Assembly: GCA_009103225.1 (NCBI GenBank)
Contig: RHPI01002910.1
Coordinates: forward strand, 257,645 to 321,644
Reading direction: 5' to 3'
Origin: Chlorokybus atmophyticus
Lineage: Eukaryota; Plantae; Mesostigma and Chlorokybus algae
Length of the DNA: 64,000 bases
A program made the translations under genes and the position numbers. Below the pieces are notes generated by a model that did no database searches, was not told the origin of the DNA, and saw only the letters and a program-made list of their open reading frames with translations. This document shows, in pieces, positions 1-54,144 of this stretch. How positions within the stretch are numbered: the first letter of the stretch is position 1; the number at the start of each line of letters is the position of its first letter.

Positions 1-853
1 GTTCTCAGCCTTATTTTCTACAATTTTGCCGCCAATTTTTTCTCCCAAAATGCCATGCCCGTTTGAGGAGCGCACGCTGCGGTCAGTTGGACGAGCCCGC
101 AGCCGGGCATCAGCAACCTATTCAGCACGCTCGCCTGCATGCATATCGGGTCCAAGGCTTGATATCTGTAAGACAACGATATCAAAGTGCAGTGCCAGCA
201 ACAATCATTCCCTGCGCTCTGCATGTTGACGTGGCAGGCTGCACAGTCAGTGGGCGGAGGCGGCGGCGGCGGTGGTGGCGCCGGTGCATATAGCCGTCGT
301 TACTCTTGGTAAAAGTTGCCGTGTGTTACAGAATTTGTTGATCAAACGGTGGTTGTGAAGCCAGGCGGAGGGGGAGGCGCGTCTGTCTCGTGGTAAGCTG
401 TAGACTTTGCCAAGCATAAGATTGCTGTTGGCATTGGCACCATGTGTGCTTTTGCAATCACACACACCTAGTTCTGGTCAGTTGAACTCTGTGCAAGAAA
501 TGTAACTCTGTAAGTGCTCTTTGAAAACGAGTACCAAAAAGCAGCAAAGCTGTTGTTGTCTTGATAAACTTGCATGCCACGAGTTTGTTTTCGTCTTTTT
601 GGTGCATTGCAGCTCATGCGCACACACGACAGCACATGCAAGACCTGCGCTGAGCTCACACTGCATGTCCCTGTGCGTCTTTCACAGGCGCCAACATACA
701 CAAAACAGAGCCCTGAGAGAGAGTGACCTCCACCCCTATTCCACACACCACAGACACAGACAACATGAGCTCAACGCGCCACTGAAGCCATGCCCTTCAC
801 CTCATAACCCTACCCACACACAACCCTCACGCACGCACACACACCCAACAACC

Positions 854-3604
854 ATGCATTGCAACCGACACGCTTTCCTCCCCTCCCTCCTCCACTCACT
901 TTCCTCTCCCTCCTTCCCCTACTTCAGACCCTCCCACCTCCCACAACCATTCACCACCCTCCCCGCACTCACCAACTCACTCACCCGCCCAGTCACAACC
1001 GCCACTCTCTCTTCTCAGCGACGGCTACACGCTGATGGCATCCCCAGCTCCCCTCCCGTCTCGCAATCTGAGTTATCTCGTCTTCACGACTTCGTGTCCA
1101 ACTGCGCGCCGGGCCGCCTGGTGGCGCTGACGGGGGCGGGGACGAGTACAGAGAGCGGGATACCGGATTATAGGTCGCCCGGGGGGGCGTACTCGACCGG
1201 CTTCAAACCAATGACGCACCAGGTGATGGGTGGTGTTGTGGTGTATGCGAACGACAGCTTTGACAGCGTCATTGCCGTTGCCTGGTGCATGCAAGCTTGC
1301 GTACCTGGAGCACGGCATTGATAGCCATGGCATCACACGCAACGACAAGATTGGTTTGATTACAAACGACAACGGATGTGCGCCATGGCGGCTCGTTGCT
1401 TCAGTTCACTGTGATGCACTGCTGAACTCTATACCAGTATTGAATTCCCTCCACTCCTTCACGCCACACGTACACTGGCACACGCACTCGCACCCGCCCG
1501 CGCCCGCAGACACCCGCACACACACTCATGTACGCTCACTTGCAGTCCTTCATGAAGTCCCCCTCCTCCCGCTCCCGCTACTGGTCCCGCTCCTTCTTCG
1601 GCTACCTGCCCTCCGTGGCCCCCTCCGCGGCGCACAAAGCGCTCGCGCGGTTAGAGAGTCTCGGGAGGCTACACGCCGTCGTCACGCAGAACGTCGACAG
1701 GTGAGAGGGGGTGTACGGGGTGTACGTGTGTGACTAACGCAAGTGCACGGTGTGTGCATGTGCATGCGTGCGTACGTAGTGAACTTATCCGGGGCTGTGT
1801 GCACGCGCACACGATCGCACCTGTCAGTACGCGTTCTCCTGCGTGCTCAAGCACGTGCACGAGTGCGAGCACACATGTATGCGTGTGTGCATGGACACGC
1901 TTTTGTATACACTTGGTATGCGCGCTGGCACGCACGCACGAGCGTCTGTATACACGTGCGCAAACACGCATGTGCGCGTGTATGTGTGTGTAGAGGTGTC
2001 TTACTGTGTTCCTGCGCGCCCGATGCATGTATGTGTTGTCATGTATGGTCATTGTTATCAACATCATGACCATGAGTTGCTTCTGCTGGTCCCAGGTTGC
2101 ACTCAAGGGCGGGGAGCAGGAGGGTGATCGAGCTTCACGGCACAATACATGAAGTGAGGTACACATACACACGCAACTCAGATGACTTGCAACATGATAT
2201 ACGGACGTATGACAGCAGCATTGCTGTTTTCTTTCTCAGGTGTTTGGAATGCGGCACGCTATATGACAGAGCTGATGTGCAGCGCGACATGGCGAGGCTG
2301 AACCCTCGAGTAAGCACCCTGCATGGTTGTTGGTGTCGATTGCATAACGCTTGTGTTATTTATGTGCGTGTGCGCGTGTGCGTACGTGCGTGCATCTGTC
2401 TGTGTGCGTGAGTCTCTGTCTGTCTGTGCTTACATATGCGCGTGTGTATGTAGTGGGCAGAGGCTCTTCAAAGCGAGGCGGCCGTGGCGGGGATGCGTCG
2501 GCCCGATGGGGACCGCGAAGTGGCACAGGCCTTTGACTTGCCCCCATTCCAAGTGAGCATGCTTCATCCAACTGTGTGTGCGATAGACCTATGCTGAAAT
2601 TGACAATGATGGTTATCACCCATGTGTCAATGTAAGGTCCCTGTCTGCGTGGCGTGCGGCAACGGCGGGGGCCTCCTCAAGCCCGACGTGGTCTTCTTTG
2701 GCGATAATATTCCGAAAGACCGCGCGGCACAGGCCATGCAAGAGGTGAGAATGTGTGTATATGTGGGTGTGCGCATGTATGCGTGTGTGTTTGTGGTGTG
2801 CGTGCCTGCGCGTGATCTGCTGTACTGACATTCGCTGGGTTGCGAGGTCAGGTGCTGAGCGCGGACGCATTGCTGGTGGTTGGGTCCTCGCTGATGGTCC
2901 TGTCGGCCTACCGCCTGGCAAGGTGTGGCATATTGTCGTGTGTATGCACGCGCGCGCGTGTGCGTGGGGGTGGGGGGGGGGGGGGGGGGGGNCAAACCAA
3001 AGTTCAACTCAGAGTCTTGCAGGTACGAATACTATCGATCCCGTAATTGTGATCATAACGTAATACCAACACACCCTGTTCTGTTGCTGTTGTGGGGTGC
3101 GCATTGCGACGTGCTGCGTGTTACAGATAGCCATTGGAGTAAATACCTTGTCAAATACACAACCAAAATGGAGCCAGCTGGCACTATTGGGGGGCGTGCA
3201 TGCGTGCGCGCGCGCATGCGTGTGAGAGAAACAACCACATATCACAACGTGCAGTGTAACTTGACGACAACAGTGTCAACAATATCAATGGACAGTTGTC
3301 CTCCTTTCCAATGTCTGCAACGTCTCTGGCAGGGCTGCGGCTGAAGCGGGCATCCCCATCGCGGCGGTGAACATCGGCCCCACGCGGGCGGACGACTTGC
3401 TCTCCATCAAAGTGGAGGCACGCTGCGGGGAGGTGAGTTTGTCGTAGGTTGCTATGTGAGGACCTGTTGTCACCTGCAGCTGTTTGCCAGTGCGCAGGAA
3501 GATTATTGTATGCTAAGCTCTTCATTTGGGTTGTTGTTATGTGTGTTCAGGTGCTGCCGAGGTTGCTGGCGATGGGTTCGCTGGAGGTGCCGCTTGTGAG
3601 GTGA
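854..3604 (+). CDS. SRT2: Class II sirtuin (SRT2/SIRT4-like NAD+-dependent deacylase), multi-exon, with N-terminal organellar-targeting-like extension
   Basis: Exons encode LVALTGAGTSTESGIPDYRSP (1120-1190), HAVVTQNVD, VIELHGTIHEV, CLECG, CVACG...LKPDVVFFGDN, LLVVGSSLMVLSAYRL, IAAVNIGPTRADD and VLPRLL, joined by GT-AG introns. ATG at 854, TGA at 3602-3604. Confidence 0.93.
2993..3189 (+). repeat. 197-bp exact copy of Helitron Rep sequence (9463-9659) inside a sirtuin intron; possibly an assembly artefact
   Basis: Identical to 9463-9659 by direct comparison. Preceded by ~20 G and one N, followed by GGGGGG. Absent from the paralogous intron at ~26810-26970. Confidence 0.85.
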
Positions 3605-4453
3605 TGCTGGGTGAGAGCAGAGTGAGAGTAGGGATAGACCATGTGACTGATAGAGTGTACAAACTGTACCAGTGAAGTAATTGGTTCATACAGCGGTAGT
3701 GGGCAGCTAGTCTGCAGGTGACAGTTACAGGCTGTTGCTCGGTTACAGCAAGCAAGCAAGCAGTACTCTGGTAGTTAGGATGCAATGTCCGCGTTTGGTC
3801 GTGTCACAATTGTTGTGAGGGCCATGCGGATGGTTGCCTCAAGCTAGAGCGGACTTGTGTGAGAATTTGTTGTTGATTGGCAAGTAGCTGAGCAGCTGTG
3901 AGAGCTTGCACCAGGAAACTTTCACTTACATTACATGACATCTGGATGGGTCGCCGTTATTCTTGACTTGCGATATGCATGCACTGCTGTCATGTCAATC
4001 TGTTCATGCAAGGAGTGTGTATATTGCTAATTCAGCATACTACTAGTACCAAGCCAACACAGACATAAGAGCTGCGCGAAGACTCTGAGAGATGGGTGTG
4101 CCAACAAACAACTCTTATGGTAGGTCAACAAATGGCTTGCACTTCATTGTGGACATGCCAGACACTGTAAACCACAGAAGCACGACCTCAAACCTTACAT
4201 TGCAGCAATTCCTGCTACTTATTGAAATAACCACGCCCTAAGTCTACCTACTGTTGCAGGAATCCCTGCCATTTATTGTAGGAATACCTACGCAATCGGC
4301 GAACACAATCTGTACAATGTATATGCGCAAGAATGTGTAACATAACAGACTATACTATACAGTATGAACAGGCAGCAGCCAATGCAAGCGCAAGTATGTC
4401 GTGCACTTGGCTGCTGCGGAGGCCTCAGATATGCAGAAGGAACTCCGCTCCCA

Positions 4454-5854
4454 CTATACCAAGTCCTCTCCCACTTCTTCCAGGTAGTGAGCAGTAGAGG
4501 CCTGCGCATTATGCAGTATGTCGCGAAGCGCCTCGGTAGCAGCAACTACGAATTCCTTCTCCGTCATGGCAGTGACTGAGGCTTTGCGATAAACCTCCTC
4601 GAAGACTATTCTCTCCATCGTCCTGAGCGAACGGCGAAACGAGCGCAGGTTGCGAGAGCTGAAGAAGTAAAACGTGCCAGCTCCAAAAAGAGACGCCCAC
4701 ATCAAGGCTGCAAAAAACAATGTCGCCTCGGTAGACAAGTACGAGCACGCGAGTGTTGCCAGGCTGAGAAAAACTGCCGTATATGCCTGCATACACAGCA
4801 AGCGAGGCATTAGGCATACAAACAAACAGAACAAGGTCATGTGCACTCATGCAAGCTTTACAAGTGCAAGTATGCACAGTAACGCTGTACAAATTGTATC
4901 ATGAGTAATGCTAGACTTCCTGTCAGCTTCATGTGCGCAACGCATAACTATTGGAATGACACAAAGTATGCAGCCAAATTACACATCTCAAGTGCTAATT
5001 AATATGCAGTGTCGGAGGATTATACAGCAGTGTGACACACCACAAGCAATGCACAGGACAATTTGTGCAGCAGCGCTTACCTGGTACAGGCTTCTCCAGG
5101 CATTCTTCTCGACATTACCCAAAGTTGTGAGCATGTCGGTCACCTGATTCTTGCTGCGCCTACGCTTTGCGACACAATCGCCCAGCTCGAACATGTTATC
5201 ATGAGCAGCGATTGAGCCTGAAGTGTGGCTCGAAACAGTCTTCGTGGAGATCAAGGCGATGATGATGAAGTATAAGTACATCATGGTGAGCTGTTCAACG
5301 TCGACATGTTGAGCGATGTACTGCCGCATACCCCAGGCAAGATACCCCAGGCAGGTCACGAGAATAACGGTGCCCACCATGCTGGTCGTCAAAAAAGTAT
5401 CACTGCCTTGCGTGCTGAACAGCATCGTAATATAGATAGTTGGTATGCAGGAAATGGCTGCTGCAAGCGCCATCCATCTGGTCGCCATGGCCGGCATCAG
5501 CCGTTCCGGAACATGAGACTTGTCATAAGCTATGAGCTTGTTCACTTGGATGCGGGAGACGCGGTCTTTCAACTTCATCGCTGCGGCTGGGCCTGCACTA
5601 AGCAGTAGCCGACCCAGATTCTCGAAGAGCTGCTTCATCTTGGCTTGCAACACTTGGTGCTTCCACTTCAAACCGGGCTCAGAGCTGCCGGGCATGACGC
5701 CAGGTATGTGATGTGGATGTGCCTTCATATTGGCATAGAGGATCATGACGAGCACGAACCACGCGACCAGCAACACCACCGCCATGGCCAACACCGCCCA
5801 GAACAAGAAGCCCTCCCCCTGTACAAGCGCGCCCAACCCTCCCTGTAACGTCAT
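4454..5854 (-). CDS. Orphan multi-pass membrane protein, copy A (at least 2 exons; 5' end uncertain)
   Basis: ORFs 4988..5899 and 4454..4846 have several hydrophobic segments (FLFWAVLAMAVVLLVAWFVLVMILY; WMALAAAISCIPTIYITMLF; AVFLSLATLACSYL) and are linked by a GT-AG intron. A clear paralog lies at 29284-30636. Confidence 0.7.
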
Positions 5855-6865
5855 GGCTGACTCGCTGTCACTTACAGGGCAAGCTAGAGCTGGCTGCAAC
5901 AGACAGAAGGAGAATCAGCAAATCTGATTGCCAATGTATGCAGCAAGCCGTGCCCAATGAAGCGTTCACAATGTGTGCATGCTCGTGTATGCACACAACT
6001 GCTGTAATGCTGCAATTGCGGCAACTTACGAGAGGGGAGCGTGGGGGAGCTTGCTGCGACTAGACTTCCGGCTGAATTGCAGCCCGCCGACCTCAGGCTG
6101 CTCCGCCTTAAGCTTGCTTGCAGCTGCGCACGCAGACAGCGCTTTGAAAAGCTGCGTGCGGAGCGCCGTTGTTAACAGCGGGACATCAGCGAGAGGCAGC
6201 GCATGCAGCAGATAGCCGTCATTGTGCGCAAGCACCAGCACCAGCTGAGCCCACCGCCCCCTCCTGCCTCCGCCCGCCACCCCGGCCGCCCACACAAAGC
6301 TGCTGCTTTAGAGTGAAGCACTGGGGCGTTCAAGTCGCTGTTATACCGCTGCATTTCCAGTATTACTGTGGAATCTTTGGTGAAGATGTCAAGATTCCTG
6401 GTTTCGTCCATATTATTGCTGGGGGGACCTGCATGCCGTGAGGGAGGACGTCAGTCCGCGGCCTGACGTGGAGGCAACGTCGAAGCTGGCTCCTCAATGC
6501 ACCTCACTGACTGGAGGTCGCGCTATGATGGCAGAGATGTTGATTGCGGCGCGATTGCGTGGCATTGTTGTCAATGACAATGTGTCAGGGGAACAGACAC
6601 CCACCTCTGATCCAGTGACATACACTACTGTACTGGGCGCGTCAGGAACCGGGGTTGCACACCGACACCGTGCTAAGTGACGAATCGTCACCAGTAGTCA
6701 CTGACGACCAGGCATCGGCGGTTGCTGTAGCAAGTGTTAATGCGCTCTAATACTGTAGTGACCAGGACTTTACGTGTTAAGTAATTCCCAAAGAGTCATC
6801 AACGTAATCTTTCACCAGAGCAAATAGCTAAAATCCGAACCATAGGGAAGCATTCTAACGGTATC

Positions 6866-6882
6866 CGCGCGCTTCGCGCGCG
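6866..6882. other. Perfect GC hairpin CGCGCGC-TTC-GCGCGCG; candidate Helitron subterminal stem-loop
   Basis: Seen directly; lies ~0.8 kb upstream of RepHel at the transition from host-like to element DNA. Confidence 0.5.
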
Positions 6883-7686
6883 TCTCAGTCGATAGAGCTG
6901 CATTATCATTATCATTCGGCTGTTAACACTGATTGTCTTCCAAGTAACTGTGATGCACAATCCATTGGTGCTAAGTATATGTGCGGAAGTAGTTCAAGTG
7001 ATAGTTAAGGAGCAATTGTAGTATGGGGACCCTTCCAACCTCGTACTGGAAAAACGCGCCCGCAGTACCGATTAACTGGCGACAAGTCGAGGTGAATCAT
7101 AGGGCCAGCGGCTGATGGTTACCCGGTCATTGCCTTTGGGATAATTCCGTAGCTATGATTGGCAATCATGGGCATTTTGCCGCACGTATGGCGACGGTGG
7201 CTTGCACCGTTTACATCCAAGTTGTTAACCGCGGTTTTCCACCAGATGGCGGCCCAACAACACGTTTTTCGTGTAGTTGAAATCTTAATGTTAAGGTAAA
7301 TTAGGTTAGCATTATTCTGTTGTTGCTAACTGTTTCAATGATCACCCAAGCCTAAATAACATAACGTTTGTGAACAACGTTGGTTAAATTCATCATTGCG
7401 TACGCGGTTAAGCAGAGTTGATTGGTGTACAGGTGACTGCGTCAGCAAAACAATCCGTCCACCAATTCACAGACCCTGATATGGCCATGCCACTGGTTGC
7501 TTGACACAATCTGTCAAAGTAGTTTCCCTAGGTCACCCATCACAGTCGTCTGCGAGACTTTGCCGAACGTTGGCGAATGTTGGAGAATGTTCAGTTACAT
7601 TGTATGGTGTATCGGGTTACGCGCCGACGCGTAAATACTAGAGTAGAGTTTGGCGTGGCACAGCCTGTTGTTACCAGTGTGCAGTT

Positions 7687-10600
7687 GTGAGCAGCGCTGC
7701 GTGCGCATTGACAGGGCGCATGGTACCTGGAGCAGAGTTGACGTCAGGTGCACCAACCATGAATGTTGAACAGCATTGTATGTTGTTGGATCATTGTGAA
7801 CAATGGGCGGATTGTGATGATATGTTGTCTGCGTGGCAACAAGCACAACGTAGGTTTGTGACTCAAATGCAATGCTGCGCACTCTGCGGCCACGTGCAAT
7901 TTGACTCTGGTAACAACATGTTACGCCTTTTACCGTTGCAATGTGGGCCATATAATCTTGCTAATGTATTCATGTCCCCATACACACAATCAGACGGCCA
8001 ATTCTATCAGTGCAACCCATGTCGTCTTGGTAGAACGTGCTGTTTATATGGTTTTGCATAATGGTTTGTACATTCGGAGTTTAGTGGAAGCCCATCCAAT
8101 GTCAGTGCAAATGTTGTCCGTTCTGAACACTTCGATCGTACTGAAAGAATTGTACAATCCTTACAGTTTCGCAAATGGTCGAGTTCAGCAGTTAAACATG
8201 ACCAATGGGCCCTTTGTCACGTGGGATGATTTCACATTGAACGATGCACATACTGCACAGCTGCGTGAATTGCTTGGTGAGTTGCTGTTCACGAACCAAT
8301 TGATACAGCAGTACAAAACTTTATCAGAACAAACGCTGGCCACGAAGGCATACCTGTTGTTGGCTCTGCCACAATCTAACACATTGTATCACGTGCACAA
8401 GAGCGCAATCCCTTGAACATTGCTGGTGACGAAGCTTACACTCACATTCTTACAACTCTTTTACCTTTTCCTGCACGCAGCACCACTGATATCCATGTAG
8501 ATATGCTGCGAGTTGGTCACGTACACATGCGAGACTCAGTGCAGCTGTTGTTACAAGTAAACGCGAACAGTGAATACAACATACCTTGTATCACGGTCGA
8601 ATCAGCTCTGTTTCCTATGCTGTTTCCATATATTCGTGGTTTCTTTGATGGCAATGTGTACACACGACTGTCAGATTACATTCAATTGCGCTTGTCCCAA
8701 AGTTTCTCTGTTTTTACTTTGTACAAACCGTATTTGTTGTTGATGTTTCACGTTCGACAAGCTCTGATGACTGTCAAAAGATGCCGTGATTTTGCCGTGG
8801 AAAGTGACATCCAAAAGTATTTGAAACAAAGACCCACTGCCAACATTCAAGATGCCATCAAGTATGCAGTCAAATACCGAGTACCTGGTGACATCGTGGG
8901 ATCTCCCAGTTGGCACCGACAAAAGTTAAGTGATTTGCTGACTTTGGTGGAAGCATGGGGCATGCCACATCTGTTTGTAACCATGACTGCCAATGAAGTT
9001 TCCAGCTCCAAATTCCCTGAGATCTCTGATTTACAAAATGTTCTGAAAGGTATTTCCCCTCAGCTATCCTGGAAGGATGCTCCGGTGGAATGTGCACGTC
9101 TGTTTCATCACCGTTTCTCCCACTTCTTCAGTGAGTACATCATGCAACGAGACATTTTGGGTCGTGTAATGCACTCCTTTATCAGATATGAAACACAGCA
9201 TCGTGGGTCGTTGCATGCGCATGTGATGTTGTGGTTACATGATGACGACGTTGAACATGTATGCAACGAAATCACTGCCTTTATCCCTGGTGACTATGAC
9301 AGTACAAATCAACGGATTATCGTGCCATCAGATCCCAAACTGAAAATTCTGTACAAATACACTGTCCGAAAACAAATGCACAAATGTCTGATGTTGGCAG
9401 TGGTTGCAGAGCGTTTAACAGCAATGCGAAATGGGATTCCCATACCCTGTGCAATCAGATCGCAAACCAAAGTTCAACTCAGAGTCTTGCAGGTACGAAT
9501 ACTATCGATCCCGTAATTGTGATCATAACGTAATACCAACACACCCTGTTCTGTTGCTGTTGTGGGGTGCGCATTGCGACGTGCTGCGTGTTACAGATAG
9601 CCATTGGAGTAAATACCTTGTCAAATACACAACCAAAATGGAGCCAGCTGGCACTATTGATGATCATAAAAGCAATGTTCTCGGATTACAAGGTCTCTCA
9701 CTCAATGAGCTGCGAATTCGGAATACCATGCACTTGTCTAAACCTGTAGCGCCTGCGGAAGCTGCTTTGATTTGTCTCGATATTCCTCTCATACAAATGT
9801 CTGCAAATGTTTCTTATGTTGACACTCGTGTTCCCGAGAAACGAACACGTGTTTTGCAAACAAAAAGTCATGTGCAAACAGTTCTTGTACATGCAGTCCA
9901 TCGGTACTGCGCCAGGGCAGATGAAGTGGAGAACATCACACTTTACAACTACTTTCGCCGCTTTATGCTCCGCGACAACAATGTAAAGCCACGCAACACG
10001 GTACGCGTTCTTTGCGATCGACTGAATGGGCAAGTGTATGAGATGAGTGAATATCGCATCATTCGTTACATCGACTACCACCCTTCGTATAACTTGGAGG
10101 GGTCTGCTTTAATTTGCTGCTGCAACATGTTGTGTTTCGCTCTGAAACGGAGTTGCTTTCACAAACCAATGCCATGCAGACGTATTATTAAGAATGTTGT
10201 TTGCGAAACCTGATCAACACTTCCCACAGTTTGCTGTATCATGTGATGCGTTATGCCGAGCGTCATTTGTACAATGATGTTCGGGTGCAACAAATGCTGA
10301 ACACTTTGCTGCACAACGTTGGGCAAATCAAGTCATTTCCTGCTGACACAACTTCCCCGAACACTGCAAGCGCAAGGGATATTTCGAGTACTGTGGTGCA
10401 AGGTGCGCCCAGTTTAGAGTCTTGTATCGAATGCCATGTTGCCAATCTTCACCAAGGTGCACTAAATGTCATCGAGTTTGAATCTGCAGTGAATCATTTC
10501 TTAACAGACGACCAGCAGACTACAGCCACCAGGATCATCGAGTCTCCACAGGGGTTGCATGTCATTTCGGGTTGTCCTGGGGCGGGCAAGACATTCATCA

Positions 10601-11766
10601 CCAAATACATCACACACATGCTGAGACTAGCGGGCGTCCCTGTTCTTCTCAGTGCAACAACTGGCGCAGCTGCATTGCGTCTCAGTGCTACAGCCTCTAC
10701 AGTACACTCCAATTTTTCTCTGCCAGTGAAAGGTCAGTTCCTACGTTTTCTCACTCCAGTAGACGACACATACAAACTGTTACAACATTGTCGCGTGTTC
10801 GTCATCGACGAGTTTTCTATAATGACTGCCCGGTTGTTTGGTCTGTTGATGTTGAGGTTGCAGCAAGCTCATGGCATGCAATGACTGGCCAACATATGCG
10901 TGATATTAGTAGGAGACCACAAACAGCTTCCAGCAGTTTGCCATCACCGCACCGCAGACACAACTTAGGTGTGCCACAAATGCCATATCTTTGCAGCTAA
11001 CTAGTGGTCACATCGCGTACAACATTACCTGACTGTATCTGTGCGGCATGCCTCAGACCCAGAATTCGCCAGTTTTTTGACACAAGTTAGAACAGGCAAC
11101 CCGCCTCAGGCGCAGATCAACACAATTCTGCAGCGTTGTGTTGTTACACCCGCGTACTTGCAGCAGCTACCAATTGACGCTACCATACTGTGTTCCCATG
11201 TACAGGACACAGATATGTTTAACAGCATGATTTTGCGTTGCAACTTTGCACAATTTGAAATACTGCCAGTTGACATACACTCTAATGCACTCAACGTTCC
11301 TGAACTTCAAGAATGGCTGCAAAAACCAAAGTTCAACCACATGCATATGGTTGCAAAGGGCACAAAACTGCTAGTCCTAGAGAACATCTCGTTGCAGTCA
11401 GGTGTTGCCAATGGGTCAGTTGGCATCGCTACCAACTTCAGATTCTTTAAGGGTAGGCTGACTAGCATCCAAGTCAAGTTCGCACACATGCAGGAGCCCA
11501 GGTGGATCCGTCGAACAGTGCAACAGCACATCACCTGGCAAGGCAAGACATACTACAAAGCAGTGTTCCCCCTGCATCTAGCTTATGCTATAACAGTACA
11601 CAAGAGCCAGGGTGCTACTTTGCAGTCAACAACAATTGTGCACATGCAAGAAGCTTTTACGCAAGGGCTTTGGTATGTGGCGCTCTCTCGCGTCACAAAC
11701 AGAGCGCATCTGCGCCTGACGCGAGTACCTACCGCGCAGGAGATGACTCCGATCCCGTGGGATTAA
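7687..11766 (+). pseudogene. Helitron RepHel (HUH Rep + PIF1-family helicase), disrupted by frameshifts and in-frame stops
   Basis: ESALFPMLFP; GMPHLFVTMTANE; HUH motif RYETQHRGSLHAHVMLW; YLVKYTTKMEP; Walker A GCPGAGKT; Walker B VIDEFS; ILVGDHKQLPAV; PLHLAYAITVHKSQGATL; YVALSRV. Frame changes near 8020, 8415, 9390-9430 and 10200. Stops at 10882, 10966 and 11002. Confidence 0.93.
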
Positions 11767-11894
11767 ACGTTCTCGAGATGCGTAGCCATTACGGAATGTT
11801 GCCACGTATTTCAATGTCCGTTTTCCATACACGGGACAACACGCAATGCCGCGGATATTTATGATGCTTGTAGCAAAGTATTGGCCACACGCAT

Positions 11895-12280
11895 CTTACG
11901 AATGTTGGCAAATGTTTGGCAATGTTTGTAAAACATGGGTCGTACCACAAATCTGTACGACACGATCAATGCTTACAGCAGGCTGTCACTTTGTATAATG
12001 GCCAGACAACGACGCGCAGTATTATAAACGTGGAGCAACGTGCATAGCTCTCGTTCAAAGCACCGTTATGCAATGCGGCAATTAACTAAATATCTCTGTA
12101 ACGACTTATTAGCGATCAGCATATGTGAATGTTTGCAAATGTTTTGCAATGTTCGTCAAATGTGGGTCGCATCAAAACAATTGTACGCCACAATGGATGT
12201 CTACAACAGGCTGTCACGCGCGTATTATGGCCTAGACCAATGAAAGCGCAGTATTGAAAACGTGAGGGCAACGTGTGCAG
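11895..12280 (+). repeat. Two diverged ~150-bp direct repeats (~230-bp period) downstream of RepHel
   Basis: GAATGTTGGCAAATGTTTGGCAATGTTT...ACAGCAGGCTGTCAC...GCGCAGTATT..AAACGTG at ~11900-12045 recurs at ~12127-12275. Confidence 0.75.
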
Positions 12281-12612
12281 ATCCGGATCAATCACGAGTC
12301 ACTACTGTCTAATGCATCTGTAGCAGTGCTACAATAGCACGTTGTCAGTGTGAGTTGTACACAAAACGTTAATCGGCTGCTTGACCTAGACAAAACCACG
12401 TGGGGCGTTCAGTGCATGATAAAGACCGCCATCGCTATTGCTATAGCAGTGCCTACATGCCTGTCACATCACCTGTATCTTCTAACGCCAGCATCGCCCC
12501 TTCGCAAGAGACGGTCACTTCTTGCAGGTACTGCAACATGGTGCCGTTGATATAGACGTTGCATTCCCAGTTTCAACTTGCCATATACTGATTTTCTCAA
12601 TGTCTTCGCAGC

Positions 12613-13703
12613 ATGGATTTCGACGCCAAGGGTCTCTTCGAGCAGTTGAACAACCAGCTCACCAACGAAGAACCAGGGTCCAAGCGGCAGCGAACGAGCA
12701 GCGGCACCAGTGGCGATGCACCTGGACGCCCACTGACGAGCAGGCAAATGGTGGCTTGTGATTCGGCTGGTGTCCCCCCCGACAAATTGACTGGACTGTT
12801 CAGCAAGCCTGAGGCGGACGCTCTCATCCGCCCCGCCAAGGAGAAGGCCAACAAATTTCGTGCCACCCACGGCGACGGTATCGCAACAGGTACCTGTATT
12901 GTGCGGGGCTCAGACACGTACATTGCGTAGTGTGCTGTGTGTATGCTCAACCCGTGCATTACAGGTACTTGCCAATATCACCTCAAGAAGATGGGCATCG
13001 ATGTGAAAGCTGACCTCAAGCGCCAGGTTGCGTACAAGTTGTGGGAGACTCTGCTGCGTCAGCAGAACCCTGACCTGCCCGCAAACGCTGACCCTGTCTA
13101 CGCCATTCCGGTTCTTACAATTGTTCCAGCCACTCTGTAAATTGCTGTCGTGCAGCACGCACAAAACATGTGCATATCATGGTCAACCTTAGAGGATTGT
13201 GCCAATGAGTACATGACGATTTGTAATGATAATTTGACCTCAGGTGTTCGAGCTGGTGCACGTGCGGCAAGTCTGCGATTGGGAGACTGCTAAGTTCATG
13301 TCACAAGGCAAAGCTGGTAAGATCATCGAACACCTGTACGAAGCCGATTCTAAGGAAGCTCATGTTGCCAACGTCGCTGCAAATGAGGTAACGCGCAGTG
13401 CCTGACTAACCCATAATCAAACAGGCTGCACTTTTGCTTGCACGTTCGCATGTGTTTTCTTTAACAACTCTGCTTCCTGTCCTGCGAGAACTTTCTGTGA
13501 CGATCCTGCCGCGCCTGTATGTTACTGCAACTGGCTGTGCGCACATACATACTGTTGTAATATATCAGTATGCTGACGCAACATAACATGCGCAGGTAAA
13601 CGATGAAGTTCAACTCCTGTTGACACAATCTGCTGCACGCAATACGACTACTGCCATCGCCAACATGCGCATTGCTGCCAGGGCGCCCAAGCGCACACTG
13701 TGA
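12613..13703 (+). CDS. Spliced Helitron accessory gene of unknown function (~4 exons; one probable premature TAA at 13138)
   Basis: MDFDAKGLFEQLNN... / GTCQYHLKKMGIDVKADLKRQVAYKLWETLL / VFELVHVRQVCDWETAKFM...NVAANE / VNDEVQLLLTQS...KRTL*, separated by GT-AG-bounded segments. Confidence 0.55.
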
Positions 13704-13714
13704 AAACAAGAGCA

Positions 13715-14137
13715 ATGACAGCGGCTGAGGTAGCAGGCAAACAAACACACGTTAACCTGGTAGCCAAGGTGGCTCCTAAGATAGGTGCAAGATTCATATA
13801 CAAGTTGACACATATAAATAAACAGACAGTTTACATAGGGCAGAGCAGCAACCCTGAGAGGCGGTTTAGGGAGCATCACAGGAGCCCGTCGAAGAGGATG
13901 TTGTGTGACTTAGTTAGCGAAAAGTCTTTTGAGGAACAAGTACCGCTTGAGGTGTTGGATCAAGCAGATACCAAGGCACAAATAGATTGGTTAGAAGCCA
14001 AGTACATTGCGCAGTACGACTCTCGCGGGTGCAAGGGGTACAACTTAGACAAAGGCAACCCGTGCAAGTTCGCTGCTTTTTGGGCACGCATTCGTAGTGG
14101 CAGTGGCTTTGGCAACTTTAAAAAGAAAAATGTTTAA
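13715..14137 (+). CDS. Intronless GIY-YIG endonuclease (~140 aa)
   Basis: FIYKLT(7)VYIGQSSNPERRFREH...LEAKYIAQYDS...GYN: both Tyr motifs, the Arg, the Glu and the GYN motif of the GIY-YIG fold are present. The ORF has no stops. Confidence 0.85.
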   Translation: MTAAEVAGKQTHVNLVAKVAPKIGARFIYKLTHINKQTVYIGQSSNPERRFREHHRSPSKRMLCDLVSEKSFEEQVPLEVLDQADTKAQIDWLEAKYIAQYDSRGCKGYNLDKGNPCKFAAFWARIRSGSGFGNFKKKNV

Positions 14138-14462
14138 TTGACTTGTGCTGACATGACTGCAAATGAAGGATTGTAATGGTAAACGAATTTGTGTTGTTTG
14201 TATGTTGCTGAGGCTAACTGTGTGTGTATATGCGCAACAACAACACCGTGATCAATCAGGCATTGCATTGCAAACAATTGTAGTGTGCACACGCGTGTGT
14301 GTCATTGCCAATTTGCTACAGTACACCCTCAGAGCCTGAACCTGCAACTTGCTGCATCGATCAAGCATCCCTATCACTGATATCTTATGCACACTCCTAC
14401 ACATTCGTATAATTAGGACGACGCTTGCAAACTTGGTTCGCGTTGAAGATCTGGAGACAGTT

Positions 14463-15410
14463 TCAGTGACTATGGCTCTGAAGGTGCGTGGGGTAAGGAG
14501 CAGCTGGCAAACACAAAATCTGTGGCATCCAACGCATGGCGGTGTCACTGATGAGGCTCTGCAGCGCATCCACGGCGACTTGCATCAGGTCTGCTGCGTC
14601 GCGCCTGAGCGTCCAATCTTTGATGCACACCACCAAATGCGCCTTCACCGAGTCAACCAAAGTCATCAGCAAACGCAACTGCCATAAACATTAGTTAGCA
14701 ACTGCAGTTTGGCACATGTGCAATGTGTCATACCTGCGCCTTGTAGTAGGTTTCGTGGATGCTTTGTTCCTCCCTGCGCCGATACAAAATGTATGCACAA
14801 TCTGCCAGACTGGTGTCCAGCTGCATCATCACGTGCTGCACCACTGTCGGTACAGGGTAGACGAATATGGGTATGGCGGTGAAGTTGCGTGCTGCCCACA
14901 AGGCGTCAAGTGTCCCCCAAAGTTGCATCCTGGCTCGAAGCACCTAAACCATGCGTTGGGCACATTATGGTTAAGCATGCCCATATGTAGTTTGAAGTCA
15001 CTCTGAGACTGCATAGTTGGGAATGGTTTGACAGCTGCAATCGGTTTCACAGTAGTCACTGTCAAGATACTCTCACCATGTTAATGTGCATGTGGTAGTG
15101 GTCACGGTTCTCCCAGAACAGCTGACGATCCATTGCCGGCGCAATCTGCCACAACCAGGCAAGCTTCTGGGTCTTTGCACGACGTACCTGTTGACAAACA
15201 ATGCAACGACGACGTTTGAGCGCAACCAACAGCATCCCAAAGTTCTGTATGATCAGTTGCACTCACTACGGTCACATGCAGTCGATGCAAGCGCCGGTCC
15301 GCAGGCTCGTCAATCCGCTTGGTGTTCACACAGACGTGTTGTTGTTGCGCATATACACATACAGTCAGCTTCGAACACAACGTGCATTTAAACACTACAG
15401 CTGTCAGCAT
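14463..15410 (-). CDS. Spliced Helitron accessory gene of unknown function, with two CxxC pairs near the N-terminus; possibly frameshifted
   Basis: Putative exons MLTAVVFKCTLCSKLT / NFGMLLVALKRRRCIVCQQVRR...HINM / SQSDFKL...TYYKAQ / LRLLMTLVDSVKAHLVVCIKDWTLRRDAADLMQV with GT-AG boundaries. A paralogous fragment lies at 18955-19110. Confidence 0.45.
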
Positions 15411-15534: not shown

Positions 15535-16190
15535 AAAACATTCGGCAACGTTTGAAAATGTTTGTATCACGCCACACAGACTCGCAAACTAATGTGACAC
15601 AGACGTGACGCAACATTCTCAAACATTCAGCAATGTTCCCGAAAATATGGTCACAGTCAATGAACCACATGAACCGTCGTTTGGGAGACATTCCACAACG
15701 TTCGGGAATGTTTGCATCACGCCGTCACACAGCACTCCCAAAGTGATGCGACGCAAACGTGACGCAACATTCTAGAACTACAGCGATGATTCGGCAGTAT
15801 GGTCACAGTCAACTAACCACGGGGAATGTCAGCTCAGTTATAGCCTGTTTGGAGGGAAACATTCGGCAACATTCGGAATGTTTTCATTACGCCGTCACAT
15901 AGACTCCCATACCTATGTGACGCAAATGTGACGCAACGTTTTCGCACATTCATCGATGTTCCCGACAGTATGATCACAGTTGATTAACCACGTGAACCGT
16001 CAGGTCAATTGTAACCGTCGTTGGGCAAACATTCGGTAAGGTTCGGGGATGTGTCCATCACTCCGTCACACAGGACTTCCAAACTTATGTGACGCAAACA
16101 TGACGCAACATTTTCGAACATTCAACATTGTTCCCGACAATATGGTCACAGTCAATGAACCAGATGAACCATTAGGTCAATAGAAACCGT
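15535..16190 (+). repeat. Four diverged tandem units of ~150-170 bp between divergently oriented Helitron genes
   Basis: Each unit carries AAACATTCGGCAAC..., CGCCGTCACA..GACTC, GTGACGCAACATT, GGTCACAGTCAA and AACCAC. A further partial unit lies at ~18795-18950. Confidence 0.85.
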
Positions 16191-16340
16191 ACAACTAGAC
16201 CACATCAGCCACGCCAGGAACATTGCTCGTATTGCCGAGCCCGCCGCCAACAAGCAACCTGAGCACGCACCAGCAAACCAAGAAGTAGGCAGCGACCTGG
16301 TGCGAGCGAGTAATAGCGTTGCAAAACCCAACTTGTCGTC

Positions 16341-16842
16341 ATGACCAAGGTCACCCAGCATGACTACTTCATGCGCTGCATCTTCGGCTGCCTGGCCGGC
16401 AAACAGTATGCAGGCTGGATCAAAGGTGTGCCTCAGAGCATGCGTAGCCACCTGCAATCAAAGCACGAGAACGACATGAAGAACTTGACAGGGCAGCAGC
16501 GCAAAGCCCTGGGTGACTACTGGGTAGCCTTGGTAAGTGCATGTGCAATGTCCTTGTGTATCTCTATTGTTGTCACACTATCAGGAGTACTTCAAATTGC
16601 CTGAAGCTAACATCGAATGCATGTTGACTGCAGAAAGAACATGCTATAATTGTACACAACGCCAACCCAATGACGGGCTACTTCATGCCAATGCAAGCCA
16701 CGTATCCATTGGGCGACACATCGGTACCGTTGCCGCCATGCCTGCAGGATGTGCTGAAGCATGTAGAGTACGACGCGGACGTCAATTTGCGCACCGCCTT
16801 GATGACAATGCCACCACATGCACAAGGCAAGCAAACAGAAAC

Positions 16843-16893
<51 letters not shown>

Positions 16894-18723
16894 CCTTTGG
16901 ATACCAACAACGGCATACGTGCATGCAAGCTGGAGAATGTGTGTGTGCAACAACAGACTCTGTACAAACACGCAAGACACCAACCACAGCGGAGACACAA
17001 GCGACGCTGTCAATAACAAAATTGCATCCCCGCAAGAGGTCCAAAAGCTAGAGTGCGCACACAACTGACATGCGTGTGACAGACGTTGACACAGGTATGT
17101 AAATATGACGATATAAAGGCGATTAACTTACAGGAAACACATCAATAGTCAAGCGCTGCGCAACAATGTGCTGAGTGTGTGTGGTTGCAGACGAGCCTTT
17201 GCCACGCATGCACCAGCCTCCAGCGCAGCAGCAAGACACAGAGCGCAACACGGTGGAAACCTTGCTCCGTGTATACACCGAGGAGATGAAAACTGCACTC
17301 GCTAGGATTTTCCAGTTGCAACAAGAAAGTAAGTGCAAATTAAGCATTACATCATCACCACTGCTGCGGCGCTCATGCAATGCTGCTGGTACAAAAAAAC
17401 AGGTGCAAACTGCCAACGACGACCTCACCCGTCGCAACGCGTATCTCGCGGAAAACATGCGCAACCAAGCAGCAAAGATCGGAACGCTACAACTAACGGA
17501 TGAACGCATCTGTGCAGGAAATAGCAACGCTGAAGGGTGACCTCGAAGTGTCAAACACCACCAACGACGAGCTCAACCGGCACATTATCAGCAATCAGCA
17601 GAGCATAGATGCTCTGCAAAAAAAAGTTCAAAACCTGAAGAGTGAAATGCAGGGACACCACCAAGAAGCGTTTGACATGCATCAACTGCGTCACGGCTGC
17701 AAGTAGCCCAAGATCAAGCGCGCCAACAGCAAAGAAACTTCGAGCAGTCCGATGCGCGCATTGCACAACTGCTAGACCAACACAAGCAAGCGCAAGCAGA
17801 GCGCGAGCAACAATAAGCAAAGGTAGCAACTACGTGCAACACTGTGTGCAACTGCAGCTCAAGTACACGTCTCAACTACTGACGCACACAACACAGATCG
17901 AAGAGCTGCGCAGTGCTTGTAAACTGCTCAACACCACTCTACAATACAAAGAGGAAGACATACCCAAAGGCATCACCTGACAGATGCTGCGCGAGCAGCT
18001 AAAAGACCAGGAGGACACCGCCAACACCTGGAAGTTTCAGTTTGCAGAGTGGACTGCACTGAATCCGGATGCCGCACAGGTAAGCTCCCTCTGCACTAGA
18101 CCATGGGAGCAACATATAACATGACTGCTGTGCAGGCGTGCGAACTGGCAAAAGCAATAGCAGCCTGCAAAGAAGTTGTGGAAAACAGTCGCGACTTCTA
18201 CATGGACAAGCTGATGAGGCTGTGCGCCTACATACTCAGGTTGGCACCGGTCCTGCGCCGCGCCGCACGAGAAGAAGAACTGCAAGCCTCCCTGCGCACA
18301 ACGTACAAGGGCAAGGAACCTATGCAGGAGGACGACATCTGCGTGTGCTGTTGGGAAAGCAAGCCACAAGGAGAAGTGCTCAAGTTGCCATGCTATGGAC
18401 GCACGCTGTGCAAGAATTGTTTGAGAGAAATGCAACACATAAGCCACGCAATGCTAGAGTGCCCCAACTGCAGGCGCTTTCAACTCCTGTTTCTGCACAG
18501 ACCCAAGGTCAAGCCCCCCACAGAAGCACTCGTAGTAATCCCAAACTCAGACACAGACACCGAAGACCTGGGGAATGACCCTGGACCACACATGTTCGAA
18601 GGGCGACCTAGGAGCAGGCCCATCGTCACGTTTGTTCTGGGGCCATTGCACCAATTGTACATGATTGTTTATGATGGCAACAAACTGCTGTTGGTGATGT
18701 CAACCGTTTGCAATAGGGCATGA
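16341..18723 (+). CDS. Spliced Helitron cargo/accessory gene: N-terminal C2H2/BED-like Zn finger, coiled coil and C-terminal RING-like domain (putative E3 ligase)
   Basis: CIFGC...MRSHLQSKH; coiled-coil exons (EIATLKGDLEVSNTTNDELNRHIISNQQSIDALQKKVQNLK); RING-like ICVCCWESK...LPCYGRTLCKNCL...LECPNCRR. Confidence 0.62.
16845..16890 (+). repeat. (TG)23 microsatellite in an intron
   Basis: Seen directly. Confidence 0.95.
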
Positions 18724-19111
18724 ATCTGCATATAATTGCCAAGGCACATGAGGATACAACCAATGCGTACAACGACTTCAATACGACGATAAACCGGAAT
18801 ATTGGCAACATTCACGAATGTTTGCGTCATGCGTCTCGTGGGACTCGCAAATTCTCGCCAGCGTGACGCAACATTCCCAAACATTCGGCAATGTTCCTTG
18901 AGTAGTCAGAGTAACCGCGACAACCGTTAGGTCAATTGTGACGTCATTGTGACCACAACGACTTGCATCAGGTCGGCTGCGGCGCATTTGAGCGCTCAGT
19001 CTGTGTTATCACATATGCATCAACATGACATTCGAACGAGGCAAGGCGTTGCATCAATCTACAAGACATAGAAAGCAACTCTGACTGTGATAGCGTCGCA
19101 TTGAGGCCCGC

Positions 19112-19380
19112 GCCCCCCCCCCCCCCCCCCNNNNNNNNNNNNNNNNNNNNNNNNNNNNNNNNNNNNNNNNNNNNNNNNNNNNNNNNNNNNNNNNNNNNNN
19201 NNNNNNNNNNNNNNNNNNNNNNNNNNNNNNNNNNNNNNNNNNNNNNNNNNNNNNNNNNNNNNNNNNNNNNNNNNNNNNNNNNNNNNNNNNNNNNNNNNNN
19301 NNNNNNNNNNNNNNNNNNNNNNNNNNNNNNNNNNNNNNNNNNNNNNNNNNNNNNNNNNCCCCCCCCCCCCCCCCCCCCCC
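19112..19380. other. Assembly gap (N 19131-19358) flanked by poly-C
   Basis: N run with homopolymer flanks. Confidence 0.97.
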
Positions 19381-23600: not shown

Positions 23601-25614
23601 GAATGTCGAAGTTTGTTTAATCCATCATCTTAAAATCCTCATTAAGCTGCGCACAAGTTTCGATAAGCGTCGTAGGGCAACAAGTTTGGTCGCGGAGGTA
23701 ACTATGTACAGCTCATATTTCAAGCGCAAGGGAATGAAATGCAAGGCAATAAAGTTTTGATTAATAAGCACAATGCTCCACTAAATAGTAGATATCTTGC
23801 GCGCCACATAGCGTATACTGCTCCTTTTGTGTCAAGCCACCCACACCTCGTCCCTAGTGCCAAGCAACAGTGTGTCCGACATCACACCCTCCCACCTCAA
23901 GTAGTCTTGGACAACAAGATGGTAGCCCTTGCCAAAACGTTTTCGCGAGTCCAACAGCAGAACGATGTCATATGCATCTCGGAATGCCTACAATAATCAA
24001 GCAGCATCTGTTACACTTGTTTTGTTCTAAAGATGCTACAAATGTTATAATGTATGAAAATTGTTGTGGCATGAGGAGGTGGCATATCCGCCAAACATGT
24101 AGCTCAGGACGCGATTGAACACCGCTGGCATGTACTTGCTTGCCAATCAACCTTAATAGTAGGTCAGCAAGTCTATAATATAATATAATATAAACGTTAT
24201 ATATTATCTGGTGTAGTTTAATACATTTAAATGCTATACATACTATGCCTGGCACGACAAATGTGTCTTGTACGGGCTTACCACCCTCCCTGCATCGCTC
24301 GCGACCTGCTAACTTCGCCACCCTCTCGGTACGCATTCTGGGTGAAGGCCATCGTGAATCATCAGGGTTTGCTCGAGTTTGGGAGATTTGCTCGCGTCCT
24401 GCATTTAAGATCCACATTTTGTATCATCGAAAGTTGCTGGGGTTTGGGTGATTTGCTGTCTTGCATTCGAGATCCGCATCTACCCGTCAAGCATCAGTAT
24501 CATGTTTACGCAAGTCAAATTAAACATATCATTCCGACTCTGTCATGGTCGATGGCACAATTACGATCGTGATCGTGCTATCGTAGTTTGAGTGATGACA
24601 TTTCACATGTCACGCCTATATTGACGATATGTGTTTGAGCTGGGCAACGGGCGATCATCGATGTAGGCATGCACCTCCAATTTTGACCAATATGTCGCGG
24701 CTTGTTATGTCTGATATTGCGGTGTCAGAAATTCAACGCGTTTGATCGGGATTACCAACAACTTCAGACCCGTTAAGGCTTGGGTTTGGGAGACTTGATG
24801 TCTTTTTCAACAATTGCATGCATGGACATGAACAGCTTTGTCAACTTTTTGCTAGCTTACGATCATATTGTCGCAACAATAATCCTATGATCACAGCAAA
24901 GCGACTTACTAAGCCCCATACTATGGGGAGTTGCTGAGTGGGCTCCCACGGGGAGCTGTAAATACAAGTCAACTTTTAAATAGGTTAAAAGAAATACAAA
25001 CATCATTGACCATGTGATAATGGAACTTAAATACCAGGTACGATTTGTTTTGTAGAAATCATCAACGATGTCATGACACGGTTACTAGATCAAAGCCAAT
25101 GTGCATGTAGCGAGTATCATAAATCACAACATGAATTTCTCATCATTAAGGTGACGTAGGGAGTGGTTGTTGCTGCGGCCGTCCGCTTCGATGAATCGCC
25201 GCAGGGTCCGTCAGTGCCGTGGGCCACATTGAAGCCTGTGGCTCGTCTTTAGATCGCCACGTCACCTCCAGCCGCAGTGCCTGGTCGGCTGCGGGAACGA
25301 GATACAGTATCTAATGCCCCGAGTATCTGGGATACTCCGGTCAGCCGACATGTGCCGGCTGCATTATGGCTTAAGATCGGTACGTCGGTTAGCCTAGCCA
25401 AAGAAAGACGTTGCCGGTCGGCAAGTCGCCGGTCATTTACTCAGTGACCAGAGCAGCATTGTGGTACGTAATCCGCTGTCGGCAGTCCACCTGTGACGCC
25501 CTTTTGTTGTGCTCGACAGTCTGACAGGGGGCCCAAAGTAGTTGTAGTGGAACCAATACACGTTACACATCACAATCGCAATTATGATCCTCGCTTGTTT
25601 TAACAGCAACATCT

Positions 25615-29283: not shown

Positions 29284-30636
29284 TTATTCCACGATCACTG
29301 CAAGGAAGTGCTCGGTCGTGGACTGGCGCAGGTTGTCAAGTAGCGCCTGGTGAGCAACAACCAACAAAACCTTCTTCTGCACGTCATCGATATATGAGTG
29401 CTTCCGACAAACCTCCTCAAAGGCCTTCTGCTGCATCAACCTGAGCAACTTGTGAAATGTGCTCAGGTGGCGAGAACTTATACCATAGCATATGGCAGCT
29501 ACAGTAAGCGCTCCCCAACAGTTGACCACTAACTGTGCAGGCGAGACGTACGCCTCGCTAACAAAGAATGCGCACACCAGTGTTACCAGGCTGAGAAGGA
29601 CAGCCACACGTGCCTGCATACACAGCAAGCCAGGCATTAGACCAAAGAAAGGAGCACTTGAATGCTTGAAGGTCATCTCGTGCTTCACAAGTGTAACGTT
29701 ACACAGCACTGCTGCACACATTGCAACATAAGTGATGCTGGAGTCTCTGTCACCTTCATGTACGTGCAACAAGCATGGATACTGTGCACAATCTGTTAAC
29801 TGCAGCCAAAGGTCAACAAGTGCAATAAAAAAGGCAGTGTTACATCACACAGCAATGTGTGCAGCAGCGCTTGCCTGGGTCCGGCTTAGTGAGGCGTTTT
29901 CCTCGATATATCCCAACGTTTCGAGCATGCGAGTCACGGCATTCTTGCGTTGTGCATCGCAATCGCCCAGCTCATTCATGTCAATGCGAGCAGCCTTCGA
30001 GCCTGAAGTGCAGCTCTCGCTAGTCTTCGTGGAATTGGATCCAGTGAGGGTCAAGTAAGTAATAAGCTGGTCAACATTGCTGTAATGAGTGATGTACTGC
30101 TGCATATCCCAAGCAAAGTACCCCAGGCCAATCACGAGGACGAAGCTGGCCACCATGCTGATCATCAACACCGCGTAATGTCCTTGCGTGCTAAACAGCC
30201 CCGCAACGTAAATTAACGGCACACTGAATAACATTGTCGCAAGCGCCATCCATCTAGTCGCCATGGCTGACATCAGCTGTACTGCAATAGAAGTCATGTC
30301 GTGAGCGATGTTGTTCACTGTAATGCAGGTTGCGCGGTCTCTTTTCTCCGTCGCTGCTGCCTTTACTTCGCCTGCAAACGCCAGTAGCAAACCCAGCATC
30401 CCGAACAGCTCCTCCACCTTGAGTTGCAACACTTCAAGCTTCCCGTCCCATGGACGCTCAGATCTCCAGGGTCCGACGCCGTAGATGTATTGTCGAAACG
30501 CCTTTTTATTGGCATATGCGATCACGACAACCACAACCCACGCAACCAGCAGCACCGCTGCTGACACCAGCAACGTCCAAAACAAGGCGCCATTCCCCTT
30601 AATGAGCACGCCCAAGCCTCCATCTATCGTGGTCAT
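29284..30636 (-). CDS. Orphan multi-pass membrane protein, copy B
   Basis: ORFs 29845..30867 and 29284..29772 align with copy A (GGLGxLxxGxGxLFW; AMATRWMALA; LFSTQG; ELGDC; FEEV.RK). The reading frame is open. Confidence 0.7.

Positions 30637-54051: not shown

Positions 54052-54144
<93 letters not shown>
53882..54144. other. Assembly gap (N 53882-54051) followed by a 93-nt poly-G run
   Basis: Seen directly. Confidence 0.97.

Follow-up and report, generated by a model that had tools for sequence, protein, structure and literature searches.

A decayed RepHel gene is followed by a GIY-YIG nuclease ORF

The stretch of DNA analyzed here, a 64-kb window of the green alga Chlorokybus atmophyticus whose positions serve as coordinates throughout, holds a Helitron-type RepHel transposase pseudogene followed, on the same strand, by an open reading frame (ORF) for a small GIY-YIG nuclease. 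The features on which the analysis of these two genes rests are the following.

7760-11766, plus strand: RepHel transposase pseudogene (Pfam matches, whole-length alignment, motifs read directly)
7873-8022, plus strand: Cys-rich N-terminal region of RepHel
9211-9234, plus strand: HUH motif of Rep (direct reading)
9614-9628, plus strand: two-tyrosine motif YLVKY of Rep (direct reading)
10570-10593 and 10801-10818, plus strand: Walker A and Walker B of the PIF1-type helicase (direct reading)
13700-14137, plus strand: GIY-YIG nuclease ORF (Pfam and NCBIfam profiles, family alignment, structural model)
13793, 13829, 13859, 13991 and 14036, plus strand: starts of the GIY-YIG motifs FIYKL, VYIGQS, RRFREH, LEAKY (with the catalytic Glu) and GYN, respectively

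The Rep domain carries an HUH motif and two catalytic tyrosines, and a PIF1-type helicase of superfamily 1 (SF1) lies C-terminal to it, as in Helitron-like elements. Between the start ATG at 7760 and the end at 11766, the plus-strand reading is broken into ORF pieces whose frames differ, namely 8413-9516 (Helitron_like_N in Pfam, E 3e-25), 9431-10213, 10201-10884 (PIF1, E 6.5e-13, and AAA_30, E 2e-14) and 11041-11766 (weak matches to the helicase C-terminal part). A preliminary description of the locus had reported a decayed RepHel with a GIY-YIG ORF within 2 kb of it, and this was borne out: the gene has three in-frame stops (10882, 10966 and 11002) and at least four frame changes (near 8060, 8415, 9400 and 10200), so that its HUH and YLVKY motifs now lie in separate frames, and the nuclease ORF begins 1.93 kb past the RepHel stop. 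The pseudogene nevertheless aligns over its full length with the RepHels of four loci from other genomes (L008, L011, L014 and L021), and its Rep piece shows weak similarity to Helraiser, an HLE1 protein (7LCC, E 1.9e-6).

No APE-type endonuclease domain was matched by Pfam in the ORFs scanned between 7.7 and 19 kb, nor was one present among the precomputed domains of 12 full-length RepHel relatives (P0167-P0178); strictly speaking, the element is therefore no Helentron. RepHel positions 9463-9659 recur as an exact 197-nt copy at 2993-3189. This copy might have signalled recent activity but was judged to be an assembly artefact, since it is wedged between a poly-G run with a single N and another G run, within an unrelated repeat.

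The ORF has the sequence and predicted fold of an I-TevI-like nuclease

The nuclease ORF encodes 145 amino acids when read from a GTG, or 140 from the ATG at 13715. It matched the Pfam profile PF01541 with an E value of 9e-9 (35.9 bits, compared to a curated cut-off of 22.6), while its best match in NCBIfam was TIGR01453, the group I intron endonuclease family (1e-5). All catalytic positions previously read from the motifs are indeed present: Y34, Y45, G47, R55, H59, E99 and N115 are kept in the window ORF, R55 is invariant in an alignment of 52 family members, and the ten positions conserved in at least 90% of these members (Y45, G47, H59, P63, M67, D70, E99, G113, Y114 and N115) are all found in it. 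The spacing of Tyr, Tyr, Arg, His, Glu and Asn is like that of I-TevI.

A word-index protein search with the 145-aa ORF gave no matches, whereas an exhaustive profile search recovered 422 relatives, the best of which are just 38-40% identical. An AlphaFold 2 (AF2) model built on the 52-member alignment reached an overall predicted local distance difference test (pLDDT) value of 83, with values above 90 at residues 30-120. Its top match in the PDB, obtained with Foldseek, was the catalytic domain of I-TevI (1mk0; target-normalised template modelling (TM) score 0.76, root-mean-square deviation 2.4 Å), followed by a second I-TevI entry (1ln0) and then by UvrC and Slx1, and the nearest clusters in the ESM Atlas were small phage GIY-YIG proteins (Uroviricota; SegE-like). 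The catalytic fold proposed earlier, which in GIY-YIG nucleases is a three-stranded sheet with flanking helices, thus stands on both the profile score and the model, which together indicate that the window ORF is a genuine GIY-YIG nuclease with a predicted I-TevI-like core.

The ORF stops about 25 residues past the catalytic core, which leaves no room for a linker or a further domain, and hence the protein is without a counterpart of the DNA-binding domain on which I-TevI specificity depends. Most family members measure 95-140 aa. As judged from the alignment, the nuclease belongs to a distinct GIY-YIG subfamily; a signature following the His (P63, M67, D70) marks the subfamily and is absent from phage relatives.

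RepHel adjoins the nuclease subfamily in other genomes

The linkage of the two genes was tested from both sides in other genomes, comprising Volvox as well as contigs from metagenomes and sequencing runs, and near-identical contigs were grouped, giving ten lineages. At least one subfamily copy lies beside a RepHel in nine of these ten lineages.

Starting from the nuclease, metagenome contigs picked purely as top GIY-YIG matches (P0004, P0043 and P0153) carried RepHel upstream on the same strand in three out of three cases.

L015, same strand: helicase 3-1331, GIY-YIG 2655-3005, gap 1.3 kb
L016, same strand: RepHel 3811-7845, GIY-YIG 9974-10285, gap 2.1 kb
L017, same strand: end of the helicase 1-762, GIY-YIG 4626-5042, gap 3.9 kb

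Starting from RepHel, the closest public relative of the window Rep (the L008-L013 family, 42% identity), picked solely for its Rep, carries this GIY-YIG as well, 350 bp upstream of RepHel. In L008, the RepHel frame is broken just by the single in-frame stops TAG, TGA and TGA (3532, 3841 and 5012), and the GIY-YIG of the family just by a frameshift of 1 nt within a T5 tract. The L008-L013 contigs recur at 98-100% identity in six samples, and L011 lacks a stop matching that at 5012; these loci are young pseudogene copies.

Further, a degenerate DNA pattern for the YIGQS...P..R..H stretch yielded 120 additional metagenome loci, which were then scanned with profiles. GIY-YIG was found in 116 of them (L077, whose record is labelled human gut metagenome, had no GIY-YIG profile match) and RepHel in three, L021, L101 and L039. 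All three score as subfamily members, and L101 and L039 also match the post-His signature pattern. RepHel lies upstream of GIY-YIG on the same strand in L021 and L101, and on the opposite strand in L039. As a control, RepHel was beside none of the 108 GIY-YIG loci from the same scan that fall outside the subfamily, mostly of the phage or bacterial type and 230-260 aa long.

The RepHel ORF of L021 (Ga0307489_10011995, 378-5158, minus strand) is uninterrupted over at least 1102 aa and ends right after the helicase. Its stop is about 400 nt before a separate, ATG-initiated ORF of 248 aa, and GIY-YIG follows 1.15 kb downstream of RepHel, beyond that ORF. This pair is apparently intact and provides the best reference, but the first GIY-YIG strand seems to lie in another frame.

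In Volvox carteri (GCA_000143455.1), at least four annotated multi-copy genes end in this domain, and Rep sequences occur 1.4-6 kb away from two of these genes, L006 and L001 being the loci where GIY-YIG is paired with RepHel. The gene models VOLCADRAFT_85992, _89037, _106710 and _107728 (L001, L002, L003 and L006) share near-identical N-terminal parts joined to the Helitron-type GIY-YIG domain and are annotated as host proteins. The first GIY strand is left out of the Volvox models, although the genomic ORF of L006 encodes it.

The chance expectation for such pairings is negligible. The recurrence of the pair in nine lineages, set against its absence from the 108 controls, supports the earlier suggestion of a Helitron lineage to which the GIY-YIG gene belongs. 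On these comparisons the nuclease is very probably an integral, conserved part of this lineage, as opposed to a gene that inserted separately or neighbours RepHel by chance.

Both genes are old companions and the nuclease has been kept working

Between lineages, the C-terminal part of the helicase is 28-40% identical and GIY-YIG 29-43%, and such similar divergence is expected if both genes have long travelled together. The preliminary description had also allowed for a later arrival of the nuclease; this is contradicted by the pairing, which is conserved across lineages in synteny kept at 30-40% protein identity.

The comparison of copies proposed earlier could be made for L027 and L113, two members of one lineage that are 86% identical in DNA. 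Their ratio of non-synonymous to synonymous substitution rates (dN/dS) was 0.27 over 129 codons, with 17.5 synonymous and 27.5 non-synonymous differences (binomial p 2e-4). This ratio indicates that the nuclease was kept functional, under purifying selection, while the element family diversified. The open state of the window ORF had been taken as another hint of selection and does not serve as one: at the disruption density of the window RepHel, about 1.75 per kb, an ORF of 435 nt would stay undamaged by chance with a probability of about 0.47. Most likely it is open simply because mutation has not yet struck, and the window copy has no likely function for the alga.

These data bear on the possibility that GIY-YIG is passenger cargo, captured once by an ancestral Helitron and carried along without a role in transposition. 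Helitrons are known gene capturers, and the paper describing HELIANO words a comparable case from Sphagnum as 'captured and transposed' in the passage concerned (PMC11417382). The RING-finger gene of the same element, described below, looks like lineage-specific cargo, with no relatives in the other loci, and two related RepHels (L007 and L014) have no GIY-YIG in their available flanks. A useless gene should decay, however, and yet the catalytic residues are conserved across lineages at 30-40% identity and the pairing persists in nine of the ten sampled lineages; the dN/dS of 0.27 between diverged copies likewise counts against a useless passenger. We therefore regard simple cargo as unlikely.

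Another history would be that of a selfish, homing-type nuclease that parasitises Helitrons by cutting copies that lack it and being copied in at repair. The nearest non-Helitron relatives are free-standing phage GIY-YIG genes (L004, together with the Uroviricota and SegE-like Atlas clusters), the side and orientation of the gene with respect to RepHel vary, and copies in L002, L003 and L028 are far from any RepHel, all as a homing gene might leave them. This is offset by the lack of a DNA-binding domain of the I-TevI type in the subfamily, whose members measure 95-140 aa and have unconserved N-terminal extensions, and by the similar divergence of both genes between lineages, as expected for co-inheritance. 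In addition, we know of no precedent for free-standing homing of a nuclear gene with introns. Homing parasitism is thus, in our judgement, improbable.

Candidate upstream exons may extend the nuclease gene

The nuclease had been described as a stand-alone, intronless gene, a view that is unproven, as the region before the ORF contains candidate exons that can be joined to it.

12613-12889, plus strand: first candidate upstream exon, opening with an ATG
12965-13136, plus strand: second candidate upstream exon
13244-13387, plus strand: third candidate upstream exon

The third candidate exon ends at a codon boundary and joins the GIY-YIG ORF in frame through a possible acceptor that places the start of the next exon at 13682. 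Candidate exons 2 and 3 do not join in frame with their best splice sites, meaning either that the copy is damaged there too or that the exon model is wrong. Searched singly, the candidate exons gave no Pfam match and no detectable relatives; compared with the ORFs that precede GIY-YIG in other lineages, they scored z values of 0.2-2.2 against shuffles, and there were no cross-lineage phmmer matches. A similarity to the 248-aa ORF of L021 noticed by eye was dropped, as it was not significant against shuffles. N-terminal extensions of the nuclease differ between lineages, and those of the Volvox gene models for this domain are long.

The candidate exons raise the question of whether GIY-YIG could be the spliced C-terminal end of the RepHel protein, a fusion like that of the Helentron APE domain. 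Both lie on the same strand in the window with candidate exons between them, which would suit such a fusion. In L021, however, RepHel ends in its own stop ahead of the separate 248-aa ORF; in the L008 family and in Volvox L006, GIY-YIG is upstream of RepHel; and in the window, the ATG at 12613 opens the first candidate exon only after an 850-nt spacer filled with repeats. A fusion is accordingly very improbable.

The genes probably form part of one dead, multi-gene element

The region from about 7.5 to 19.0 kb is best explained as one dead copy of a multi-gene Helitron with all its genes on the plus strand, in the order RepHel pseudogene, GIY-YIG gene and RING-finger gene, and with one AATGTT-rich repeat family between them.

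7540-7600, no strand assigned: GAATGTT-type motif cluster immediately before the RepHel start (direct reading, motif census)
11900-12042 and 12127-12275, no strand assigned: two intergenic repeat copies of about 145 nt, AATGTT/AACATT-rich, 78% identical
14210-15372, no strand assigned: 1.16-kb segment within a 37-nt inverted repeat (arms 14210-14246 and 15336-15372, 92% complementary)
15536-16190, no strand assigned: four tandem units of the intergenic repeat family, about 170 nt each
16317-18720, plus strand: candidate spliced gene for a Cys-rich, coiled-coil and RING-finger protein (RING at 18340-18477)
18796-18942, no strand assigned: further intergenic repeat unit (94% over 36 nt compared to the unit at 15604)

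The repeat family is confined to the spaces between these genes and occurs nowhere else in the 64 kb, which argues that the three genes are one unit of at least 11.4 kb. The cluster at 7540-7600 resembles the downstream intergenic repeats at the motif level only, and BLAST returned no repeat copy there. At the other side, nothing recognisable of the element follows the unit at 18796-18942 before an assembly gap is reached (N run at 19131-19358; a second N run occupies 53882-54051).

The RING region matched zf-C3HC4_3 with an E value of 8e-4, which does not reach the Pfam cut-off. Among the loci scanned, no counterpart of this gene was found near any RepHel/GIY-YIG pair outside this genome, and for that reason it appears to be lineage-specific, local cargo. 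A (TG)23 microsatellite at 16845-16890 lies inside the putative gene region and is presumably intronic. The segment at 14210-15372, between the nuclease gene and the tandem repeats, gave no domain matches and may be a small nested insertion with terminal inverted repeats; a 53-nt stretch within it (14570-14622) recurs at 18953-19005 with 79% identity.

Short asymmetric terminal inverted repeats or end hairpins of the HLE2 type were not found in the candidate end regions, and the element ends are undefined; similarly, the points at which homology ends among L101, L113 and L027 revealed no Helitron-like end. Two indirect pointers favour the putative HLE2 label of the preliminary description, namely that the published family with a GIY-YIG is an HLE2 and that the window Rep resembles the HLE1 protein Helraiser only weakly. 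An inverted repeat of 194 nt (19107-19300 and 53882-54075) was discarded as an artefact, produced by N runs beside long C or G homopolymers.

In another lineage, too, tandem repeats of about 300 nt lie right downstream of the GIY-YIG gene (L028, 494-1111; L039, 14190-14493; L116, 2407-2714), and repeat arrays past the nuclease gene may be a feature common to these elements. Elsewhere in the window, a stretch of about 4 kb occurs twice in direct orientation, about 24 kb apart (1846-5914 and 25613-30696; 74-94% identity), and holds a minus-strand ORF of 303 aa (4988-5899) in which several segments are hydrophobic. Either a segment was duplicated here or another element is present in two copies; the Helitron sits between the two stretches.

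A proposed second nuclease alongside the HUH nickase

Considering the linkage, age and selection data jointly, we think it probable that the GIY-YIG gene is an old, inherited nuclease of this Helitron lineage that, when intact, would provide a second activity that cuts DNA, alongside the HUH nickase of RepHel. In such a scheme, RepHel would leave one strand of the target or donor uncut, and the nuclease would nick or cleave that strand; its targeting would probably come via RepHel, via its own variable, fast-evolving N-terminal part, or via DNA structure at the element ends. The specific mechanism, a second cut beyond the reach of the HUH nickase, is put forward more tentatively, by analogy with Helentrons, which are likewise rolling-circle transposons with a second nuclease besides the HUH nickase. 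It is usually the APE endonuclease domain that is proposed to make such a second-strand cut in Helentrons. The analogy is one of function, as that domain has the APE fold and is fused to RepHel, whereas the window nuclease is a GIY-YIG protein encoded by a separate gene.

Several observations weigh against the view of GIY-YIG as an inherited second nuclease. Firstly, a constant position downstream of RepHel had been put forward as a check, and while the pairing recurs, the position does not: six lineages share the window arrangement, with the nuclease downstream of RepHel on the same strand, whereas two have it upstream and two carry it on the opposite strand, Volvox showing two arrangements. 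Secondly, the partners are also found apart: no RepHel was detected within 10 kb on either side of the Volvox L002 and L003 copies or in the 10.7 kb upstream of the L028 GIY-YIG, and the related RepHels of Chlamydomonas eustigma (L007) and of L014 have no GIY-YIG in the available flanks. Thirdly, a GIY-YIG tree of 159 domains, in which 9 of 154 inner branches were supported and the window sequence fell in no supported group, was not used as evidence and does not establish one origin for the Helitron-linked subfamily. Fourthly, no inverted match of 10 nt or more was found between the candidate ends of the window element, nor any hairpin in 18721-19106 before the assembly gap, so that in the window the GIY-YIG gene is a putative part of a mobile unit. 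Lastly, contigs from two low-coverage runs are short, unspliced and collinear with the genome, spanning the putative intron, and are uninformative on transcription or splicing, and the nicking role of the nuclease is purely inferred.

Comparison with known systems

The preliminary description had suggested that GIY-YIG may be a third nuclease class recruited by a Helitron lineage; that novelty is lost, as a GIY-YIG domain has already been reported, in one sentence of the HELIANO paper that reads as a capture, for HelenSM92, an HLE2 family of the moss Sphagnum magellanicum (PMC11417382; preprint 10.1101/2024.02.08.579435). By that brief description, HelenSM92 is like the window element in being a Helitron-like element with GIY-YIG besides RepHel, and differs from it in being a moss family, whereas the window element is green-algal, dead and equipped with a third (RING) gene. 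Other literature naming both Helitron and GIY-YIG concerns Penelope-like elements or unrelated genes. Several of the contigs carrying the pair are AT-rich (40% GC in L008-L013 and 31-39% in L101, L113, L027, L028 and L039), and such metagenome contigs could be derived from mosses.

The phage GIY-YIG homing endonucleases, exemplified by I-TevI, provide the best structural match of the window nuclease (1mk0 and 1ln0), in line with its NCBIfam assignment to a group I intron endonuclease family. I-TevI has a tethered DNA-binding domain, whereas the window ORF has neither a linker nor a C-terminal DNA-binding domain, and its candidate N-terminal exons have no domain match; moreover, enzymes of this type are encoded in introns or free-standing in phages and organelles, while the window gene sits in a nuclear Helitron. 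Penelope-like retroelements are eukaryotic mobile elements that also use a GIY-YIG nuclease, but their partner protein is a reverse transcriptase rather than RepHel, and no reverse-transcriptase match was found in the ORFs around the window GIY-YIG domain. The Fanzor-carrying Helitron2 elements CRe-1, CRe-2 and CRe-3 of Chlamydomonas reinhardtii are also green-algal Helitrons with a separately encoded, intron-containing nuclease gene (PMC3627910). They differ in that Fanzor is an RNA-guided, RuvC-type nuclease carried by non-autonomous elements, whereas the window has GIY-YIG beside RepHel.

Against this background, the window holds a new but dead representative of a type of element that has scarcely been described, namely a deep branch of Helitrons whose GIY-YIG partner is conserved. 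A wider proposal, which we hold only tentatively, is that the subfamily marks a distinct and ancient Helitron branch, occurring in green algae, probably also in mosses, and in further eukaryotes, in which a separately encoded, I-TevI-like nuclease would be required as the second nuclease of rolling-circle transposition.

With regard to annotation, several Volvox 'GIY-YIG domain-containing proteins' that are filed as host genes are probably transposon genes. Both the handling of the second strand in the rolling-circle transposition of Helitrons and the purpose of the extra endonuclease of Helentrons are unsettled matters, and a small, separately encoded nuclease kept together with RepHel is a clean genetic handle on them, as the two proteins can be expressed and mutated apart. 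If the proposed role is true, the GIY-YIG gene would add a third solution, independent of the APE domain of Helentrons and of the Fanzor genes found in some algal Helitron2 elements, and would offer a simple two-protein system for asking why these Helitrons need a second cut.

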